Shown here: positions 5,862 to 53,035 of the stretch, piece after piece | Numbering within the stretch: position 1 is the first letter of the stretch | How the letters are laid out: the number at the start of each line of letters is the position of its first letter | Sequence record: NC_042081.1 | Strand: one strand, 5' to 3' | DNA length: 64,000 nucleotides | Position numbers and translations under genes: made by a program | Notes under the pieces: model-generated | Told to the model about the DNA's origin: nothing | Seen by the model: the letters and a program-made list of their open reading frames with translations, nothing else | Database searches by the model: none

Positions 5862-5887
5862 ACACCCTCCCTTAATTGGGAGGGTGT
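5862..5887 (+). terminator. hairpin between nrdA and nrdB
   Basis: ACACCCTCCC-TTAATT-GGGAGGGTGT; 22-bp core identical to 7541-7562. Confidence 0.55.
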
Positions 5888-5955: not shown

Positions 5956-7119
5956 ATGTCTACTAAATCACAACTACCAAAGAAAATCTTCAATGCGGCT
6001 AAGAGTGATTATCATCTACCAGAAATTATTCTTGGAGATGACCCAGGTCTACTAGATTCAATCCACACTCATTATCCTAAAATGTGGGACCTATATAAGC
6101 GTCTAAAAATGCTTGATTGGGATGAGTTAGAATTTGACTTTTCTACTTGTCTAGTAGAATTTGAAACATGTGATAAATCAACTTATGACATGATGATTAA
6201 GACACTGGCGTGGCAATGGGAAGCTGACTCTGTAGCCAGTCGTTCCATTGTTAATATTCTATCACCTGTCATGACTGATTCACGAGTATGGGCAGGATAT
6301 GTACGTATTAATGATAATGAAGACGTACATGCTTTAACTTATTCTGAAATTGTACGTAATAGCTTTAAAGATCCTAAAGTTATTCTAGATGAAATTCTTA
6401 GGGTAGAAGAAGCACAAGAACGGATGGTTGCAGTAGCCCGCACTATGGGTGAAGCACATGACGCAGTTCACGCGTATGCTCTTAATCAGGTACCCAATGA
6501 TCAAGAACTTTACAATAAGGTATTCATGTTCTTCATCGCTCTATATTTCCTTGAGCGTATTCAGTTCATGGCATCCTTTGCTGTGACTTTCGCTATTGGT
6601 CGCACCGGTGCATTCCAGCAAATTGCAGCTGCTGTTAAGAAGATTGCCCAAGACGAATTCGAAATCCATGCGCAATATGGCCAAGAAGTTATTCGTGCAC
6701 TACTAGCAACTGAACGTGGTAAACTCGCTTATAGTCAATGTAAAGATAAAATCATTGAACTACTATGGGAAATTGTAAAGACTGAAGTCACCTGGGTTAA
6801 TTATCTATTCTCTGAAGGTCGTGAACTAACTGGCGTTAATGCGACTAAACTTATTAACTGGGTACTTTTCAATGCTAATGCCGCAGCAACATTCCTAAGT
6901 GTTGAAAATGATATTGTAGAACAGTATCAAGTAGAGTTTAAAGAATCGGCTGGATTTGATTTTGTTTGGCCAGAGAAGAACCCACTTCTTTATATGGAAG
7001 ACTACCTAGATATTTCATCAACCCAAGCATCTCCTCAAGAAGAAGAGAAACCTGATTACATGGTTAACGTTGTGAATGATGTTGGCGAAGAAGAAGAATT
7101 CGAAGTGGATTTCATGTGA
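5956..7119 (+). CDS. nrdB: ribonucleotide reductase class Ia beta subunit
   Basis: WEADS, EDVHALTY, LERIQFMASF and DEFEIH di-iron ligand motifs; acidic C-terminal tail. Confidence 0.96.
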   Translation: MSTKSQLPKKIFNAAKSDYHLPEIILGDDPGLLDSIHTHYPKMWDLYKRLKMLDWDELEFDFSTCLVEFETCDKSTYDMMIKTLAWQWEADSVASRSIVNILSPVMTDSRVWAGYVRINDNEDVHALTYSEIVRNSFKDPKVILDEILRVEEAQERMVAVARTMGEAHDAVHAYALNQVPNDQELYNKVFMFFIALYFLERIQFMASFAVTFAIGRTGAFQQIAAAVKKIAQDEFEIHAQYGQEVIRALLATERGKLAYSQCKDKIIELLWEIVKTEVTWVNYLFSEGRELTGVNATKLINWVLFNANAAATFLSVENDIVEQYQVEFKESAGFDFVWPEKNPLLYMEDYLDISSTQASPQEEEKPDYMVNVVNDVGEEEEFEVDFM

Positions 7120-7532
7120 TGAATAAATTAATTCTTGTACTATCCTTAGTACTCGCATCTATGATTCTTGAAGCCAGTGAAATTAAAACAACCACTAATG
7201 GGATTATTAAACAAGTCGATTGCCAACTTGTAGCTAAAGATAATAGTATCGCTGGTGCAACTATTGGAGGTACCGTAGGAGCTGCTGCCGGTGCTGCGGT
7301 AGGTAAAGCACTTCTTGGTAAATCGGGTAGTTGGATTGGAGGTCTGATTGGTGGGGCAGCTGGCGGTGCTATCGGTAATAACATGGCTGCAACAGAAACT
7401 TACCAATGTAAGATGATCATTGAAGATCATGGTAAACTGTACATGAATCAAATCGTCACAAATAAGAAGTTAGAACCAGACATGTCTGTAACTATTGTAG
7501 AAATGTCTGATGGTACCTACGAAATAATGTAG
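7116..7532 (+). CDS. exported glycine-zipper protein
   Basis: N-terminal hydrophobic signal; GATIGGTVGAAAGAAVG and GGLIGGAAGGAIG GxxxG repeats. Confidence 0.8.
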   Translation: MMNKLILVLSLVLASMILEASEIKTTTNGIIKQVDCQLVAKDNSIAGATIGGTVGAAAGAAVGKALLGKSGSWIGGLIGGAAGGAIGNNMAATETYQCKMIIEDHGKLYMNQIVTNKKLEPDMSVTIVEMSDGTYEIM

Positions 7533-7540
7533 CCATAATG

Positions 7541-7562
7541 ACCCTCCCTTAATTGGGAGGGT
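7541..7562 (+). terminator. intrinsic terminator of the nrd operon
   Basis: ACCCTCCC-TTAATT-GGGAGGGT followed by TTATG. Confidence 0.65.
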
Positions 7563-7617: not shown

Positions 7618-9510
7618 ATGAATAAAATGCTAAACTTCCTAAACCACACGCTATATAGCGGTACTGAAAAAGTATCTTCAAAAGCTACGCCGAGTCTAGA
7701 ACACTTTAAAACAAATGTTGAGCAAGTCGATAAAAAGATTCTACAACCCTTTAGTACTAAATTTAAAACCATTCTAAAAGAATGTTACAGTAATGAAGAG
7801 TGGGTTGAAGAACAGTCATTTATTGAAGAACCTATTGATCTTGGTTCAGCTGCACGCGGTCTTACCGAGCGCGGTATTATGCGTGGTGATTGGGGACGCT
7901 TAGCGCATTCCACTATTAAAGAAGCAGAAGGTATGATGCGTACTTATAGTGGTCGTCTAAATGAAGATATGGAGGCATCTGAAATTAATGAAGTAATTCA
8001 AGATATGCCTTATAACTTCACAGCTGGTTCAGCTAATACCAGTCGTTTAGAAGAAGATGATTCTATTTTTGTTGAGGCTGATACAACTGTAGTTGAACCT
8101 CTATCTAAGCAGACTCTGCCAAAAGTAGCAGAGCTTACTAATCAATTAGTGGAAGTCTATAATCGAATTACCGAAGAATTTACAGAAACTGGTATTGCTA
8201 AAGTTGAACAAGTTGAGCAACCAGCAGTACTTGTAGCACTTGGTGAGATCATTAGTAGTTTTAATAAACTAATTGATTTATCGTGCGGTGCTCTACCAGT
8301 GGAAGAAACTGTTATTGTAGAAGAAGATCCGTTACCTGCTATTGTTACTGGTCCAACTACTGAACCCATTGATGGTGAAATCCCACCGGTTGATGCTATC
8401 AATAATACCGCATTAGAAGAGTTTATTGAAGAAGTACTAAGTACTAATCCAGAATTTATTAAATACCAAAGTATGGGTGATAGTAATATTGATTCATATC
8501 TAACTGGGGATGACTGGATTATACTAAAATTTAAAGATGGCTCTTATTATTTATACAATGCCCAAAGTGCTGGTGAAACGAATATAGAAATCATGAAAGA
8601 TATGGCCGAAACTGGTAGTGGTCTTAATGGTTTTATAAATCGCGTTGTCCAGGGTGGCTATGTAGAGAAGACCATCGTTAATGAAATCGATAATAATCCC
8701 GGCTTTATGTATGTCTCAAATGAAGGTCTTATCGACACCATTAAGAGTATCTTCAACTCTGGCCCTGAGATCAATCTCGATAAAAAGAAGAAAGCTATTG
8801 CTACGCTGAAAAGTACCTATGGTGACGCCAAATGGGTGGCAGAAGCAAAGCTTAAAACCGGCGAAGTAAAAGTATCGAGTTACGAGACGTTCGCGTCCAA
8901 TGATCCTAAGGCCGCAAAAGCCAATATCACTAATGCTGTAGCTAAAGCTGATCGTCACAACCAGAAAGTTCTAGATGAGAACAGTAAGATGCTAGCTCCC
9001 GTGGTTAATCTGTTCAAAGGGAATGATTGGCAAGACCCTAAGAAAGTCGCTACTCTTTTGGCCGAATGGAAACCTGATGTAAAGACAAACTTCCAAGAAC
9101 CCAAATGGCCCGATAATGCTGGTACTAAGATTAAGTTACTTGATGCTACCGGTATTGTGGAAGCAGCTAACGTTATCATTGATGTTCTGTCTAACAACAC
9201 TAAGACTATTGCGGACGCTTGGTTAGCCCAGTATCCTGACCTATCTGTCAATGGAGATATCTACAAACATAAGCTATCCACTATTAAAGATAAAGACGCT
9301 CTTGAGGACGTATATCTGCTGGCTAAACGGGCCGATAATATCATTCTTAACATTCATGCAGCGTACGACGATGCTAAGGTCGAATCTACCTATCGAGTAT
9401 TTGCTATCGATATGTTGAAACTAATGCAAGCGTCTATCAGTAGCTTCCCAAGTGGTTCATCCGTAGAGAACACTAATGAACGCAATACGCTCATTGGTAT
9501 TGAAGAATAA
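7618..9510 (+). CDS. putative virion head protein, probably protease-processed, with internal KTSC-like domain
   Basis: 630 aa; acidic N-terminal half; S/A/G-x-E sites (PSLE, TALE, VSNE|GLIDTIK) typical of phiKZ-type prohead processing; SNIDSYLTGDDWIILKFKDGSYYLY...GSGLNGFIN segment. Confidence 0.6.
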   Translation: MNKMLNFLNHTLYSGTEKVSSKATPSLEHFKTNVEQVDKKILQPFSTKFKTILKECYSNEEWVEEQSFIEEPIDLGSAARGLTERGIMRGDWGRLAHSTIKEAEGMMRTYSGRLNEDMEASEINEVIQDMPYNFTAGSANTSRLEEDDSIFVEADTTVVEPLSKQTLPKVAELTNQLVEVYNRITEEFTETGIAKVEQVEQPAVLVALGEIISSFNKLIDLSCGALPVEETVIVEEDPLPAIVTGPTTEPIDGEIPPVDAINNTALEEFIEEVLSTNPEFIKYQSMGDSNIDSYLTGDDWIILKFKDGSYYLYNAQSAGETNIEIMKDMAETGSGLNGFINRVVQGGYVEKTIVNEIDNNPGFMYVSNEGLIDTIKSIFNSGPEINLDKKKKAIATLKSTYGDAKWVAEAKLKTGEVKVSSYETFASNDPKAAKANITNAVAKADRHNQKVLDENSKMLAPVVNLFKGNDWQDPKKVATLLAEWKPDVKTNFQEPKWPDNAGTKIKLLDATGIVEAANVIIDVLSNNTKTIADAWLAQYPDLSVNGDIYKHKLSTIKDKDALEDVYLLAKRADNIILNIHAAYDDAKVESTYRVFAIDMLKLMQASISSFPSGSSVENTNERNTLIGIEE

Positions 9511-9522
9511 CTTACTGAGTAT

Positions 9523-9688
9523 GTAATGATATGTAGAAATGATCCCTCCCCCTCGTTTCTACATTAGTCATAATAAATCGGAGCCAGTCCCCCTTCCAAC
9601 TGGCTCCCAGAGAGTAAAACTCTTTGCTGGGCATTAATGACGATATATCGCCTCCCTTCGGGGAGGCTTTATATTTTTTTTGTTTTTT
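9523..9688 (+). ncRNA. putative structured small RNA with two C-rich loops
   Basis: 12-bp stem 9531-9564 (loop TCCCTCCCCC), 9-bp stem 9580-9607 (loop CCCCCTTCCA), further stems, then a terminator; TATG late-promoter-like motifs at 9520 and 9530; no ORF. Confidence 0.55.
9650..9688 (+). terminator. intrinsic terminator
   Basis: GCCTCCC-TTCG-GGGAGGC plus long T tract. Confidence 0.85.
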
Positions 9689-9735
9689 ACTAGTGTACCT
9701 TAAAATATGTATAAATAAAATAGAGTAATTATAAC

Positions 9736-10188
9736 ATGATCAAAAATGAACTTTTACCAGGGCTAATCTATGCCCAAAAAGAATTTGATAAAATTGCAGC
9801 TAATGTAAAAGACTATGATAAGTATAAAAGACGCGAAGCTGGTAGGGCAAGTGCCGTTTTAAGAAGTCTAGTGAGCAATATTGTAAATCAGAATAAACCA
9901 TCCTCACTTGAACATGAAGGCAAAGTTAGTACTACTAATACTAATGAATATTTAGAAGAAGTTAATAATTACTTCTTTAACATTAATAATATTAAATTAA
10001 TTTCTCCTAAACTCATAAAAGAGAAATTAACAATTGATCTAATGAATATTTATGTTAAATGGAATATGATTGGAGTGGCTGGCCGAAATGATGTTCCAAT
10101 TATTGAACACAGAATTAATGATTGGTGCGAAGTGACCGATGTCTACATTAATGGTAATAAGATAACTTCTTTACAATGGCCACGTTGA
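9736..10188 (+). CDS. hypothetical protein
   Basis: 150-aa ORF. Confidence 0.7.
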   Translation: MIKNELLPGLIYAQKEFDKIAANVKDYDKYKRREAGRASAVLRSLVSNIVNQNKPSSLEHEGKVSTTNTNEYLEEVNNYFFNINNIKLISPKLIKEKLTIDLMNIYVKWNMIGVAGRNDVPIIEHRINDWCEVTDVYINGNKITSLQWPR

Positions 10189-10246
10189 ATTTAAAATAAG
10201 TTGTAATAAAATACCTAGCATTACATGTTATGTATTGAAGCACAAT

Positions 10247-10331
10247 GCCCGAATGGTGAAATTGGTAAACACAGAAGACTTAAAATCTTCCGGCTACGGT
10301 CTTGTCGGTTCGAATCCGACTTCGGGCACCA
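10247..10331 (+). tRNA. tRNA-Leu (TAA)
   Basis: GCCCGAA/TTCGGGC acceptor, GAAGA-CTTAAAA-TCTTC anticodon arm, long variable arm, GGTTCGAATCC, CCA. Confidence 0.95.
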
Positions 10332-10340
10332 ATTTAAATA

Positions 10341-10416
10341 CGGAGTGTAGCGCAGTTGGTAGCGCGCCTGCTTTGGGAGCAGGATGTCGGGAGTTCGAGT
10401 CCCCTTGGGCGCGCCA
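10341..10416 (+). pseudogene. chimeric tRNA-Pro (TGG) with unpaired acceptor stem
   Basis: D and anticodon arms normal; 5' CGGAGTG cannot pair with 3' TGGGCGC (1 Watson-Crick + 2 wobble of 7); T stem has an A-C mismatch; ends GCCA. Confidence 0.75.
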
Positions 10417-10422
10417 TTTAAT

Positions 10423-10498
<76 letters not shown>

Positions 10499-10504
10499 TA
10501 TTCT

Positions 10505-10530
10505 AAAGAGTAGCTTCGGCTACTCTTTTA
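10505..10530 (+). terminator. terminator of the tRNA cluster
   Basis: AAAGAGTAGC-TTCG-GCTACTCTTT. Confidence 0.8.
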
Positions 10531-10582
10531 TGTTGCCATGGGTTATCTTATGAATTAAAATGATTTACTTGAGAGCACACTC

Positions 10583-11590
10583 ATGTTTGAATTACTATTA
10601 TCGCCAGATATAGGCGAAGAGTTACCCTTGGTTGGATTTAATGAAATTATTAAATTAGGTGATCTACCTGTAGCGTTAGCTGGTACAATGTCATATGTGG
10701 ATGGAAATACACTGTATGTTGGATCTGGTCATCATACTGAAGGACAAACAGCTGCAACTGTGTTCAGACGTTTTACCATATCGCCATTTGCCGATATAGG
10801 TGCAACTGCTTCTGGAACATTCTTACCAGGGGTATCTTTAGGATTTGGGACATTACATAAGAATAACTTTATTGTTTATGGCGGTATTACTGGATGGAAC
10901 TCGGCTGGTAATGGTGGTACGGGAACATCTAACTTTATACAACATTTTGATATAGCTACAGGCAATAGGGTTGAGCGATATAGTGGTCCCGTACCACTTT
11001 GGGGCACAGCCTCCGCATCAGATGGTAATGATCTTATTATGTGTGTTAACCCAGTTAGGGTAAATGCAATGCGGTTAAAACCATCAAGTAAGTCTTGGCT
11101 TAGCGGGCAAGACTATTCAGGTGGTGCTCGTTCAGGTCAACAGTTATTCTTTTATAATGGTTACTTTTACCATTTTGGTGGTTGGGATAATACAAAGAAC
11201 ATACCTAATCTTGAAGTTTATCGATATAATGCAACTACCTTAATATGGGAGCAAACACCTTGGATGATTATACCTGCTGATAAAGGAACAATCTGGCAAG
11301 GTAATGGTTATGTAGATGGGGACTATTTTAATTACCTTAACGCTGTTGATGTCGGCGGTGTAACTAAAATGTTTGCACAACGTTTTAATATTAGGCGCCG
11401 GAAATGGGCTGAACCATTTGAACTAGGTATCGGATTCCTTAATATTTCATCTATAGCTAAAGGTCCGGATAATAGCATGATCATTGTAGGTGGATCTAAA
11501 ATGCCAGTTGGTGGTGGAGCATATATGTTGAAAAGCCAATTGTTATCAGGTATCTATCAGGTAAAACTAGCGCCATTAATCATTGATTAA
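10583..11590 (+). CDS. Kelch-like beta-propeller protein, possibly virion-associated
   Basis: Repeated hydrophobic-GG...Y/W units (LYVGSG, FIVYGG, FYHFGGWD...VYRYN...W, MIIVGG). Confidence 0.75.
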   Translation: MFELLLSPDIGEELPLVGFNEIIKLGDLPVALAGTMSYVDGNTLYVGSGHHTEGQTAATVFRRFTISPFADIGATASGTFLPGVSLGFGTLHKNNFIVYGGITGWNSAGNGGTGTSNFIQHFDIATGNRVERYSGPVPLWGTASASDGNDLIMCVNPVRVNAMRLKPSSKSWLSGQDYSGGARSGQQLFFYNGYFYHFGGWDNTKNIPNLEVYRYNATTLIWEQTPWMIIPADKGTIWQGNGYVDGDYFNYLNAVDVGGVTKMFAQRFNIRRRKWAEPFELGIGFLNISSIAKGPDNSMIIVGGSKMPVGGGAYMLKSQLLSGIYQVKLAPLIID

Positions 11591-11624: not shown

Positions 11625-11748
11625 CTGGCACGATGATATTATGTAAGAGTACTATAATAAAGTATTCTTAAATCTATCCACTAAACACACTCGGTGGTAG
11701 AACTTATTATAGAGTGTGTCTAAATGCCAGGGGTTTGCCACCCCTGGC
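11625..11748 (+). ncRNA. putative structured RNA element
   Basis: CTGGCA/TGCCAG closes two hairpins (11644-11670, 11685-11719); alternative GCCAGGGG/CCCCTGGC hairpin at 11726-11748; strand uncertain. Confidence 0.4.
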
Positions 11749-11875
11749 TATATTCATTGTTACTATTATAAATTCATTTATAGATGAGAAAAGGTTTTAT
11801 CACCTTTTCAAAATCGGCATTTGATTCTAGTTAAAAAAACTGAATCTATGCTACATTGTAATAAAGGAGTCTATT

Positions 11876-12549: not shown

Positions 12550-12625
<76 letters not shown>

Positions 12626-13225: not shown

Positions 13226-13425
13226 TTGAGCTAGTGCATCTAGGTATTGTATCACTCACCTATCTAAATAACATATACCCTCCCGCAATGGGAGGGCTTT
13301 ATGCCGTTATCTTATGAAGCTGTATTACCATAGCGATTACAAAGTACGCATATGCGAAGTCATTTTAATGGCTTTGCATATGCCATTAACTATAAATTAT
13401 AGTAATTTTTAGAAGAGGCATTTAA

Positions 13426-16494: not shown

Positions 16495-17351
16495 TCACAT
16501 TTAAAATTCGGAATCCAAACTCTAGATCTATTACGAGTATAGAGGTGTATCGAGAACTGACGGGGGTGCCAATTCCCGATGTACCGGTTAATCCACCACT
16601 CCAGAAACTAGATGGATTCACTACTGCCATTATTGACTATGATGTTGTAACTGGTAATATATACGACTACCGTATTAGGACCGTACGTGAAGGTGGTGAC
16701 TCTGCAATGAGTCCTGTATTTACGTTCAAAGCTGTATCACCTTACGGACCAGGTGGTTTCTTAGAACCTATGGCTCAAACCGTAGGTGCCGCGCTCCTGG
16801 ATAAAGTAACTAGCCTAGAAGAACTACCCAGCTTACAAGAACTCTTGGCGCTGTTTGACGGACAACCAAATAACGCTATTAACTGGACGGATAAGTGGGT
16901 TAAAGTTAAACAAGGCTCAGATATCTATTTCTTCCCGAGTATGGGTTACATTGAAGTACCCAAGACTAATATAGCGGCCCTACTCAGTCGTATAAATGCT
17001 ACCCCTACAATAACCAAAGGGGATTGCAAATATTCTTTTAGGGCCAGTGATTTACAAGAAAGATCATACATGCCGGTACTAGACGGTAGATTTGTATGTA
17101 AGTACCCACTGCCAACTGAATATCCTCGGAAGTCTATGGCGTCAGCTATTAATGATATCGTCGGTAAGAATATAGATAACGTTAGGGTATTCATGACTGT
17201 ATCCGAATCAACGTCTACTGTAAAGGTTTATAAAGATACACAAAAATATGGATCATCCGTGGCGTCTATAGTCAATCCTGTTTCAGATAGCGGGACAGAT
17301 TGGTATTGGAAACCTATACTGAAATTCGTACAAGAATCGGGGGTGGTTTAA
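16491..17351 (+). CDS. putative virion/tail protein with FN3-like N-terminus
   Basis: RNPN...IEVYR...IIDYD...YDYR...YGPGG. Confidence 0.6.
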   Translation: MITFKIRNPNSRSITSIEVYRELTGVPIPDVPVNPPLQKLDGFTTAIIDYDVVTGNIYDYRIRTVREGGDSAMSPVFTFKAVSPYGPGGFLEPMAQTVGAALLDKVTSLEELPSLQELLALFDGQPNNAINWTDKWVKVKQGSDIYFFPSMGYIEVPKTNIAALLSRINATPTITKGDCKYSFRASDLQERSYMPVLDGRFVCKYPLPTEYPRKSMASAINDIVGKNIDNVRVFMTVSESTSTVKVYKDTQKYGSSVASIVNPVSDSGTDWYWKPILKFVQESGVV

Positions 17352-22852: not shown

Positions 22853-22880
22853 TAATGCCCTCCCCGAAGGGAGGGCATTA
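22853..22880 (-). terminator. intrinsic terminator
   Basis: TAATGCCCTCCC-TTCG-GGGAGGGCATTA. Confidence 0.8.
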
Positions 22881-23360: not shown

Positions 23361-23502
23361 TATATTTTCCTCTTAGATGTCAAAAACCCTCCCCGATCAG
23401 GGGAGGGTATCTCATTGGTACTTCTTCAGCAAAACTGAAACTAAGATAAAAGAGCAATCGTAAAGGAACTACATAGAATAGTGTATTTATTTTACTATTT
23501 TT

Positions 23503-40095: not shown

Positions 40096-40146
40096 AAAAA
40101 AATAAAATATAAGCCCTCCCGCAATGGGAGGGCAATATAATAACTA

Positions 40147-46445: not shown

Positions 46446-46499
46446 AAAAAAGATAAATAAAACCCTCCCCGAAGGGAGGGTGTATATTAAGTAATTATT

Positions 46500-49515: not shown

Positions 49516-49551
49516 AATAGCCCTCCCCGAAGGGAGGGCCATATGCTCTTA

Positions 49552-52650: not shown

Positions 52651-52707
52651 TATTCGCCTACCTTTTCAAAAAGCAAGAAGTTCATTATTCCACCAAGGGA
52701 AAATAAA

Positions 52708-52725
52708 GCCTCCCCGAAGGGAGGC
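52708..52725 (-). terminator. terminator after thyA
   Basis: GCCTCCC-TTCG-GGGAGGC-TTTATTTT. Confidence 0.8.
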
Positions 52726-52732
52726 GTTTATG

Positions 52733-53035
52733 TTAAACAGCAACTTTACCAGCAATGTGTGGATGATATTCATAGTTCTCGATAACAAAATCATCTACAC
52801 CAATTTCCCGAATATCTTTACCAATAGCTTCTTCTTTAAAACGGATGGTAGGTAGAACCTTCGGTTCACGAGTTAATTGAAGATCAGTTTGTTCTTGGTG
52901 GTTAGAGTAAATATGTACATCACCACCAGTCCAGATAAACTCTTCAGCAATCATATTCATTTGGTTAGCTAACATGTGAGTCAGCAGACTATAGAACGTG
53001 ATGTTAAAGGGTTTTCCTAAGAAAGTATCGACACT
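52733..53035 (-). CDS. thyA: thymidylate synthase exon 2
   Basis: SVDTFLGKPFNITFYSLLTHM...GDVHIYSNH...YHPHIAGKVAV; in frame after splicing. Confidence 0.93.
   Translation of the reverse strand, partial: SVDTFLGKPFNITFYSLLTHMLANQMNMIAEEFIWTGGDVHIYSNHQEQTDLQLTREPKVLPTIRFKEEAIGKDIREIGVDDFVIENYEYHPHIAGKVAV

Follow-up and report, generated by a model that had tools for sequence, protein, structure and literature searches.

A conserved late small RNA with two C-rich loops in Pseudomonas phage SL2 and related phages of Pseudomonas aeruginosa

What does Pseudomonas phage SL2 (NC_042081, genus Phikzvirus) keep in the 225-nucleotide (nt) intergenic gap between gp011 and gp012, where its annotation places no gene between positions 9510 and 9736? 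The window analysed here is the first 64 kb of the SL2 genome, with identical coordinates and a GC content of 35.6%. A previous sequence-only reading of this stretch proposed that the gap encodes a late small RNA (sRNA), presenting two C-rich loops that resemble an anti-Shine-Dalgarno sequence and occluding G-rich ribosome-binding sites (RBSs). Nucleus-forming jumbo phages rely on polymerases of their own for transcription, and their RNA is exported to the cytoplasm; to our knowledge, a function has been established for very few regulatory RNAs of strictly lytic phages, and we know of none in the nucleus-forming jumbo phages. Our analyses show that the element is a real, conserved and already published small RNA, the existence and timing of which are known, and that the anti-Shine-Dalgarno mechanism is unproven. 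What is new here is a family spanning three genera, a fold supported by covariation, an invariant second loop, the uncoupling of the RNA from PHIKZ302, and a scan of the phage genome for targets that gave a negative result.

The transcript itself is known from phiKZ, for which Putzeys et al. (2024; PMC10914365) mapped transcripts by long-read sequencing with selection for 5' ends. Upstream of PHIKZ302 they report a small intergenic RNA, 141 nt in length, that has its 3' end at the terminator T131; it is abundant and confirmed by northern blot, where full-length read-through is also visible, and the transcription start site (TSS) of its promoter, P144, is enriched in 5'-triphosphate-selected libraries (PMC10914365). 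The TSS of P144, a promoter classed as 'late promoter', is at 274148 on the minus strand of the phiKZ record and T131 is an intrinsic terminator at 274007, the 141 nt from one to the other constituting TU237, while units TU233-236 represent read-through from P144 (PMC10914365 supplement). Two further features of that map are relevant: TU238, the PHIKZ304-303 mRNA, runs from P145 to T131, and a separate late promoter, P143, which was also detected by Wicke et al., follows T131 with its TSS at 273977, 26 nt before PHIKZ302 (PMC10914365 supplement). Hence, the terminator-bearing sequence is also the 3' untranslated region (3'UTR) of the PHIKZ304-303 operon, and, because P143 follows T131, gp012 and the tRNA genes beyond it are independent of P144. 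The discoverers interpreted the phiKZ transcript as premature, 'conditional' termination in a 5'UTR (PMC10914365). A published study using gradient sedimentation does not list this RNA.

By blastn the SL2 region is 90.5% identical to the PHIKZ303-PHIKZ302 interval of phiKZ, and alignment carries phiKZ positions 274148 and 274007 (L001:3016-3157) to 9534-9675 of the window. Late promoters of phiKZ consist of TATG with G as +1, a motif that is frequent in these AT-rich genomes (Yakunina et al. 2015). The sequence-only reading had drawn attention to two such motifs, and both are present: that at 9530-9533 is the late promoter and is kept in every relative, but the first (9520-9523) is not conserved, being TATC in phiKZ. 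The +1 G falls at 9533, one base off the mapped start at 9534, and the spacing from TATG to terminator is the same in SL2 as in phiKZ and fits 141 nt. The element adjoins the stop codon of the gp303 homolog, on the strand corresponding to TU237, as it does in the related phages described below. In locus, strand, promoter motif, terminator and length, therefore, SL2 agrees with phiKZ TU237 (Putzeys et al. 2024, PMC10914365); the difference is that a discrete, abundant transcript is known from phiKZ, whereas SL2 is known from sequence and its record carries no annotation of the RNA. From the 90.5% identity we infer for SL2 the transcript ends, shared terminator and read-through that were demonstrated in phiKZ. 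It is close to certain that the SL2 element is the ortholog of TU237 and gives rise to a discrete late RNA from the plus strand, as the sequence-only reading had supposed.

Relatives of the element extend beyond the genus. The region was found by blastn in 47 Phikzvirus records at 90-100% identity, and its 5' half at 72-74% identity in eight Pawinskivirus phages of ~300 kb (PA1C, PS119XW, phiLBG22, phiHQ, BRkr and others). A covariance model that combines the predicted structure with five distinct Phikzvirus sequences scores SL2 at 180 bits and phiKZ at 179 bits; it gives 55-59 bits to the Pawinskivirus versions and 49 bits (E = 6e-9) to a version downstream of the gp303 homolog of PhiPA3 (Miltoncavirus). 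The corresponding RNAs would be ~177 nt long in PA1C and ~156 nt in PhiPA3. Every carrier found infects P. aeruginosa. The syntenic gap of 201phi2-1 and Phabio, which are phages of other Pseudomonas species, displays no similarity and no C-rich loops; it holds only a short unit in which TATG, after the gp303 homolog, is followed by a terminator hairpin within 60-80 nt (L166:4800-4890 and L165:4710-4790 respectively). Since these units share the place of the RNA and not its sequence, the position of the short unit seems older than its content. Scans of IMG/VR and of metagenomes with patterns for hairpin 2 did not enlarge the family: a strict pattern returned phage PA7 itself only, a loose pattern, which also returned 120 metagenome loci, produced chance matches, and none of the IMG/VR loci, the set screened with the covariance model, was confirmed. 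A paralog search of the window with the model gave one extra match, at 52700-52800 on the minus strand, which is a repeated terminator and not a second copy.

The predicted fold is far more stable than expected of its composition: RNAfold assigns 9533-9675 a minimum free energy (MFE) of -55.9 kcal/mol, compared with -30.6 +/- 3.4 kcal/mol for shuffled sequences (z = -7.5; 0 of 200 shuffles as good). The MFE and centroid structures coincide and comprise a 5' hairpin, a three-way domain and a terminator. The helices anticipated from the sequence are borne out, including a perfect 9-bp stem (9580-9588/9599-9607) with its loop, a third hairpin, a closing helix, which has its core at 9567-9571/9637-9641, and a terminator with a UUCG loop and T-run. 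The first stem needs revision: 9531-9542/9553-9564 does form 12 bp at the DNA level, one of them G-T, but transcription starts at G9533 or U9534, so that hairpin 1 begins at the very 5' end of the RNA and has 10 pairs. Similarly, the proposed likeness to the 16S 3' tail fails in its 'GAUC' part, because the G is a stem base that covaries from G-C to A-U in phiKZ-type phages; this part of the resemblance is a structural accident. The terminator belongs to a repeated family, and the same sequence occurs at 52700-52730(-) and elsewhere. Members of this family recur genome-wide, with a C-rich arm, a loop of 4-6 nt (often TTCG), a G-rich arm and TTTAT, and are often readable on both strands; sites include 5865-5884, 7542-7561, 13278-13296, 22858-22875, 23387-23407, 40114-40132, 46463-46480, 49521-49538 and 52709-52730, among others.

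Nine distinct sequences, taken from the three genera, each fold alone into this architecture; the closing helix is predicted separately for each of the eight Phikzvirus and Pawinskivirus versions and, in a shifted position, for PhiPA3. Because the model alignment of the Pawinskivirus sequences misplaced hairpin 3 and the closing helix, base pairs were counted on a MAFFT alignment of eight sequences and the closing helix was assessed from single folds. In hairpins 1-3, 98.1% of alignment cells are paired, and displacing the partners by 1-3 columns lowers this to 38-49%; there are four compensatory pairs, and none of the column shuffles reaches the observed covariation score. Hairpin 1 has two compensatory pairs with 100% of cells paired, and hairpin 3 one with 93%. 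Inclusion of PhiPA3 brings a G-C to C-G exchange in hairpin 2 and the series A-U/G-C/U-A in hairpin 3, and reading the sequences shows that the closing helix is kept between genera by changes from G-C to A-U and from U-A to C-G, so compensatory changes occur in every helix across the versions. With a depth of only three lineages, this covariation is supportive rather than overwhelming.

The same alignments identify the strand under selection. G-U pairs occur at seven helix positions, and their frequency indicates that selection acts on the plus-strand RNA, for each would be an A-C mismatch on the opposite strand. This bears on another suggestion of the sequence-only reading, that a minus-strand RNA with GGA-rich loops serves as a sponge for RsmA/CsrA. 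The minus strand of a 175-nt stretch does fold better than its shuffles (z = -4.3), but the plus strand folds better still (-60 kcal/mol, z = -6.2); the mapped transcript, promoter and terminator lie on the strand of PHIKZ302; and the terminator scan called none with a proper T-run on the minus strand, hairpin 2 itself excepted. Given these mismatches and the published orientation, we dismiss the sponge as extremely improbable.

Might the RNA have no function of its own, being just the gp010-gp011 operon's structured 3'UTR and terminator, with a TATG in it by chance? The phiKZ gp304-303 mRNA (TU238) does end at the same terminator, and TATG is abundant in such genomes. However, the phiKZ start site was enriched by selection for 5'-triphosphates, the RNA is abundant on blots, and there is covariation in the helices alongside an invariant loop 2. 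Moreover, three genera conserve the TATG and the block upstream of it but not the 3' end of the upstream gene: the last ~220 nt of the gp303 homolog cannot be aligned between SL2-type and phiKZ-type phages, and similarity resumes at 9519, with the sRNA promoter. A discrete transcript exists, and both stems and loops are conserved across the relatives; this explanation is already largely refuted, and we give it very little credence. As a separate observation, there are signs of mosaic recombination around the RNA, at 7116-7532 and 9300-9519. Two alleles of gp010, a small glycine-zipper protein homologous to PHIKZ304, are only ~56% identical to each other, and KTN4 and AttikonH10, the sRNA regions of which are 100% identical to that of SL2, have a gp010 that is 56.5% identical to the SL2 protein, like phiKZ.

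The neighbourhood of the RNA is conserved on one side only. Upstream there is a gp303 homolog in all three genera; downstream, Phikzvirus has gp302, Pawinskivirus has tRNA-Leu directly, and PhiPA3 has gene 374, its PHIKZ302 homolog being located elsewhere. We looked for a conserved, regulated gene that follows without an intervening promoter and found none common to the three genera, P143 lying between. As the downstream gene varies by genus and has its own promoter, the element is not simply the PHIKZ302 leader, and that label is weakened accordingly.

A role in cis can be framed more broadly, such that P144 and its promoter-proximal terminator meter late transcription into gp012 and the tRNAs, with the short RNA as an aborted by-product. 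Candidate RNAs of this kind are known in jumbo phages (17 in phiKZ and 11 in 201phi2-1, one directly upstream of a tRNA), and ours resembles them in its TSS, a terminator within 250 nt and partial read-through. Metering agrees with the discoverers' view of 'conditional' termination in a 5'UTR and with the read-through on their blot and in TU233-236 (PMC10914365), and in each of the three genera the tRNA region follows downstream of the element. The short units in the syntenic gap of 201phi2-1 and Phabio also suit it, since they keep their position after the gp303 homolog and imply that the promoter-terminator arrangement outlives its sequence; they share neither the sequence nor the C-rich loops of the RNA described here. 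On the other hand, P143 serves gp012 and the tRNAs from beyond the terminator, the gene downstream is not conserved, and metering needs neither an invariant 8-nt loop nor three covarying helices upstream of the terminator. Nor did we find a structure competing with the terminator, either in folds of the nascent RNA or with its 3' arm barred from pairing, which costs 18.9 kcal/mol and leaves the 5' arm in a 4-bp helix only, and no Rfam leader or riboswitch matched the SL2, PA1C or PhiPA3 versions at threshold. Metering is unlikely on this balance, if a shade better placed than the other alternatives. Pairing of loop 1 with the terminator 3' arm was considered separately and rejected; the register tried does not pair, and the terminator is better by the same 18.9 kcal/mol.

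Attention therefore falls on the loops. All nine sequences, across three genera, agree at 8 of 8 positions in the core of loop 2, CCCUUCCA, and the linker joining hairpins 1 and 2 is identical at only 4-6 of 17 positions between genera. Six of the nine stem pairs of hairpin 2 never vary, and two loop-proximal pairs change in compensatory fashion. Loop 1 is UCCCUCCCCC in SL2, differs by one C-to-U change in phiKZ and is shorter, with CUCC, in the other genera, CUCC or UUCC being kept in every version. Both loops are predicted to be exposed, with unpaired probabilities of 0.84 for loop 1 and 0.91-1.0 for loop 2 (0.84-1.0 over all homologs). Decamers with at least 8 C are found in three places in 128 kb, that is, both strands of the window, and loop 1 is one of them. 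The Pawinskivirus versions possess two extra, partly exposed C/U-rich tracts with CUCCUU, and PhiPA3 shares the CUCCUUGUUGUGUUGAUG stretch, which is partly paired in its predicted fold. This stretch lies between the three-way domain and the terminator in Pawinskivirus and PhiPA3 (L003:3125-3165, L004:1625-1665, L164:3325-3350) and is lacking from Phikzvirus. Together with the terminator, the CUCCUUGUUGUGUUGAUG part of PhiPA3 yields a sub-threshold Rfam match to ErsA of P. aeruginosa (Pseudomon-1; 22.9 bits, gathering score 50), which derives mostly from the terminator and was set aside as noise.

Small RNAs of Gram-positive bacteria with C-rich loops pair with ribosome-binding sites, and it was by this analogy that occlusion of G-rich sites had been proposed for the phage RNA. 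We assessed RBS words and duplexes for 87 annotated genes in the first 50 kb of SL2, using duplex energies of each loop with windows from -25 to +10 and gene-internal windows as the control, and then scanned the whole SL2 genome for perfect complements, of at least 7 nt in the case of loop 1. No clear support for occlusion emerged. Between -18 and -4, AGGA, AAGG, AGGAA and AAAGG are the most frequent words; these are A-rich purine tracts rather than G-rich ones, and such Shine-Dalgarno sequences fit runs of C poorly. Loop 1 pairs better at RBSs than internally (-5.6 versus -4.5 kcal/mol, p = 3e-5), as does loop 2 (-5.3 versus -4.9 kcal/mol, p = 0.02); yet an advantage of ~1 kcal/mol is marginal, and any sequence containing CCUCC would show the same. 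Internal controls also beat the best RBS duplex (-14.9 kcal/mol). That duplex joins loop 1, with an internal mismatch, to CGGGGGUGG, an unusually G-rich run in the RBS region (17321-17350) of the virion structural protein gene gp021, which starts at 17351. Among the 96 complements of loop 1, 63 are 3' arms of terminator-like hairpins and so already paired, and a 7-nt match coincides with a real RBS only twice, at the genes for an internal head protein and thymidylate kinase. Matches to loop 2 number 151, which is about the chance level, and none is at an annotated start or RBS; the longest, of 9 nt, is on the strand opposite annotated genes. The six invariant stem pairs of hairpin 2 suit protein recognition as well as pairing, and the 3' tail, UUUAUA, is presumably a poor Hfq site. 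In sum, the phage genome offers no convincing specific target, and what is left is many weak contacts of 4-6 nt, a host RNA, or a protein.

The last of these defines a further rival, in which hairpin 2 and the C-rich loop 1 are binding sites for a host or phage protein that is titrated or recruited. The invariance of six hairpin-2 pairs beside a linker that has diverged is what such a site might display, and the dearth of extended complements in phage mRNAs is in keeping with it. Furthermore, the 5' arms of the 63 SL2 terminator-like hairpins resemble loop 1, because their 3' arms complement it; loop 1 has, in effect, the sequence of the 5' arm of the commonest phage terminator, and a protein might conceivably read these arms. 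Against this, compensatory change in the two loop-proximal pairs of hairpin 2 suggests that shape rather than sequence is preserved exactly where a protein would be expected to read. A protein-binding or decoy RNA is thus improbable to much the same extent as metering, and just behind it. A more specific version, a late decoy that captures a host-specific partner (either a G-rich host RNA or a protein reading the C-rich 5' arms of terminators) through loop 2 and the terminator-arm-like loop 1, is decidedly speculative.

The RNA was also compared with further known systems. We take its C-rich loops to be akin to those of Staphylococcus aureus RNAIII and RsaE/RoxS; like these and ar14, an alpha-proteobacterial family with CCUCCUCCC loops (Rfam RF02344), it is short, ends in a terminator and exposes at least two C-rich motifs in the loops of its hairpins, but it differs in host and phage lineage, and the phage RBSs of SL2 fit poorly. 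Membership of ar14 was rejected: the match over hairpins 1-2 is weak (19.9 bits, E = 0.17, against a gathering score of 58.8), has no counterpart in the Pawinskivirus or PhiPA3 versions, and reflects shared CCUCC-type loops and not homology. Neither RsaE nor RNAIII gave an Rfam match at E up to 10, and permissive thresholds applied to SL2, PA1C and PhiPA3 returned sub-threshold noise only. The enterobacterial DapZ and MicL are sRNAs of 3'UTR type, with their own promoter and the terminator of the upstream mRNA; they depend on Hfq and carry a long U tail and a single-stranded seed. The SL2 element is similar in that its promoter comes just after the gp011 stop codon and its terminator is shared with the gp304-303 mRNA (TU238), and dissimilar in its short UUUAUA tail, in presenting its conserved bases in loops and in the read-through into downstream genes.

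Overall we favour a discrete late RNA that acts through trans pairing of its loops, although tentatively, since this explanation as a whole falls short of an even chance. On the proposed mechanism, the phage non-virion RNA polymerase would initiate at the G of TATG 9530-9533, or the next base, and the strong intrinsic terminator would release an RNA of ~141 nt ending near 9675; the gp010-gp011 mRNA from upstream would stop at this terminator too, and read-through into gp012 and the tRNA genes would involve a minority of transcripts. The RNA is predicted, with the support of covariation, to consist of a hairpin at its 5' end, a three-way domain that includes two more hairpins, and the terminator, and to display two single-stranded C-rich loops. 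It would then probably be a stable, trans-acting regulatory RNA that lacks Hfq-type features, and its loops, chiefly the invariant CCCUUCCA, would probably contact a G-rich partner by loop-to-strand pairing. A host RNA, or a large number of short Shine-Dalgarno-type sites, is a likelier partner than a single phage mRNA, because extended phage complementarity is wanting and carriers are limited to P. aeruginosa phages. Taken as a mechanism, trans loop pairing is the leading possibility but still a doubtful one; it ranks above the metering terminator, followed by the protein decoy and, well behind, an RNA without a function of its own.

Coordinates of the features are collected in Table 1.

Table 1. 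Features of the SL2 locus, in window coordinates.
Feature	Position	Strand	Description	Evidence
gp011 (upstream gene)	7618..9510	+	Virion structural protein, PHIKZ303 homolog	Annotation
Promoter block	9519..9533	+	Conserved; ends in late-promoter TATG 9530-9533, +1 = G9533	Alignment
Small RNA	9533..9675	+	~141-143 nt; ortholog of phiKZ TU237	phiKZ ends mapped, 90.5% identity, fold z
Hairpin 1	9533..9562	+	5' end of RNA; 10 bp; loop 9543-9552 UCCCUCCCCC	RNAfold, covariation
Closing helix	9567..9641	+	9567-9571 paired with 9637-9641; encloses hairpins 2 and 3	Individual folds
Hairpin 2	9580..9607	+	9 bp; loop 9589-9598 CCCCCUUCCA	RNAfold, alignment
Hairpin 3	9608..9626	+	8 bp; 3-nt loop	RNAfold, covariation
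Intrinsic terminator and T-run	9650..9681	+	Stem 9650-9656/9661-9667, UUCG loop	Terminator scan, RNAfold
Second TATG (phiKZ late promoter P143)	9706..9709	+	Separate gp012/tRNA promoter, 3' of sRNA terminator	Conserved in Phikzvirus
gp012 (downstream gene)	9736..10188	+	PHIKZ302 homolog; not a conserved neighbour of the RNA	Annotation, synteny
tRNA-Leu(UAA)	10247..10331	+	First gene of downstream tRNA cluster	ARAGORN

Other classes of feature were sought in the gap. ARAGORN called no tRNA or transfer-messenger RNA (tmRNA) within 9500-9700, and the RNA had no CRISPR-DR, tRNA or tmRNA match in Rfam at E up to 10. A small protein was rejected too: the sole ATG of the RNA, at 9539, opens a frame of 32 codons, but it is ATA in phiKZ-type phages. 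Beyond gp012, ARAGORN finds tRNA-Leu and then tRNA-Asn. No tRNA gene of this stretch appears in the RefSeq table for SL2, although ARAGORN finds three, the third at 12550-12625. In SL2 tRNA-Leu (10247-10331) is followed directly by tRNA-Asn (10423-10498), whereas phiKZ has ~1.5 kb extra there relative to SL2 10188-10583, consisting of tRNA-Pro, PHIKZ301, tRNA-Met, PHIKZ300, 299.1, 299 and tRNA-Asp. A second short unit (11643-11755, plus strand) comes after gp013, the PHIKZ298 homolog; it extends ~111 nt from TATG 11640-11643 to a terminator at 11726-11748, is without C-rich loops, and matches the published phiKZ non-coding RNA '3'UTR_PHIKZ298 / 5'UTR_PHIKZ297' (270595-270485, ~110 nt).

The practical gain from these results is modest, namely that the element can be annotated in SL2 and its relatives, that the PHIKZ302-leader label should be dropped, and that the anti-Shine-Dalgarno reading is to be treated as one hypothesis among three. 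Were the decoy for a terminator-reading protein true, one sRNA would tune termination or the stability of mRNA 3' ends across the late transcriptome, by way of ~60 look-alike terminators. For the biology of these phages, the RNA represents a good entry point, being abundant late in infection, with a structure supported by covariation and an invariant 8-nt loop, in three genera on one host species.

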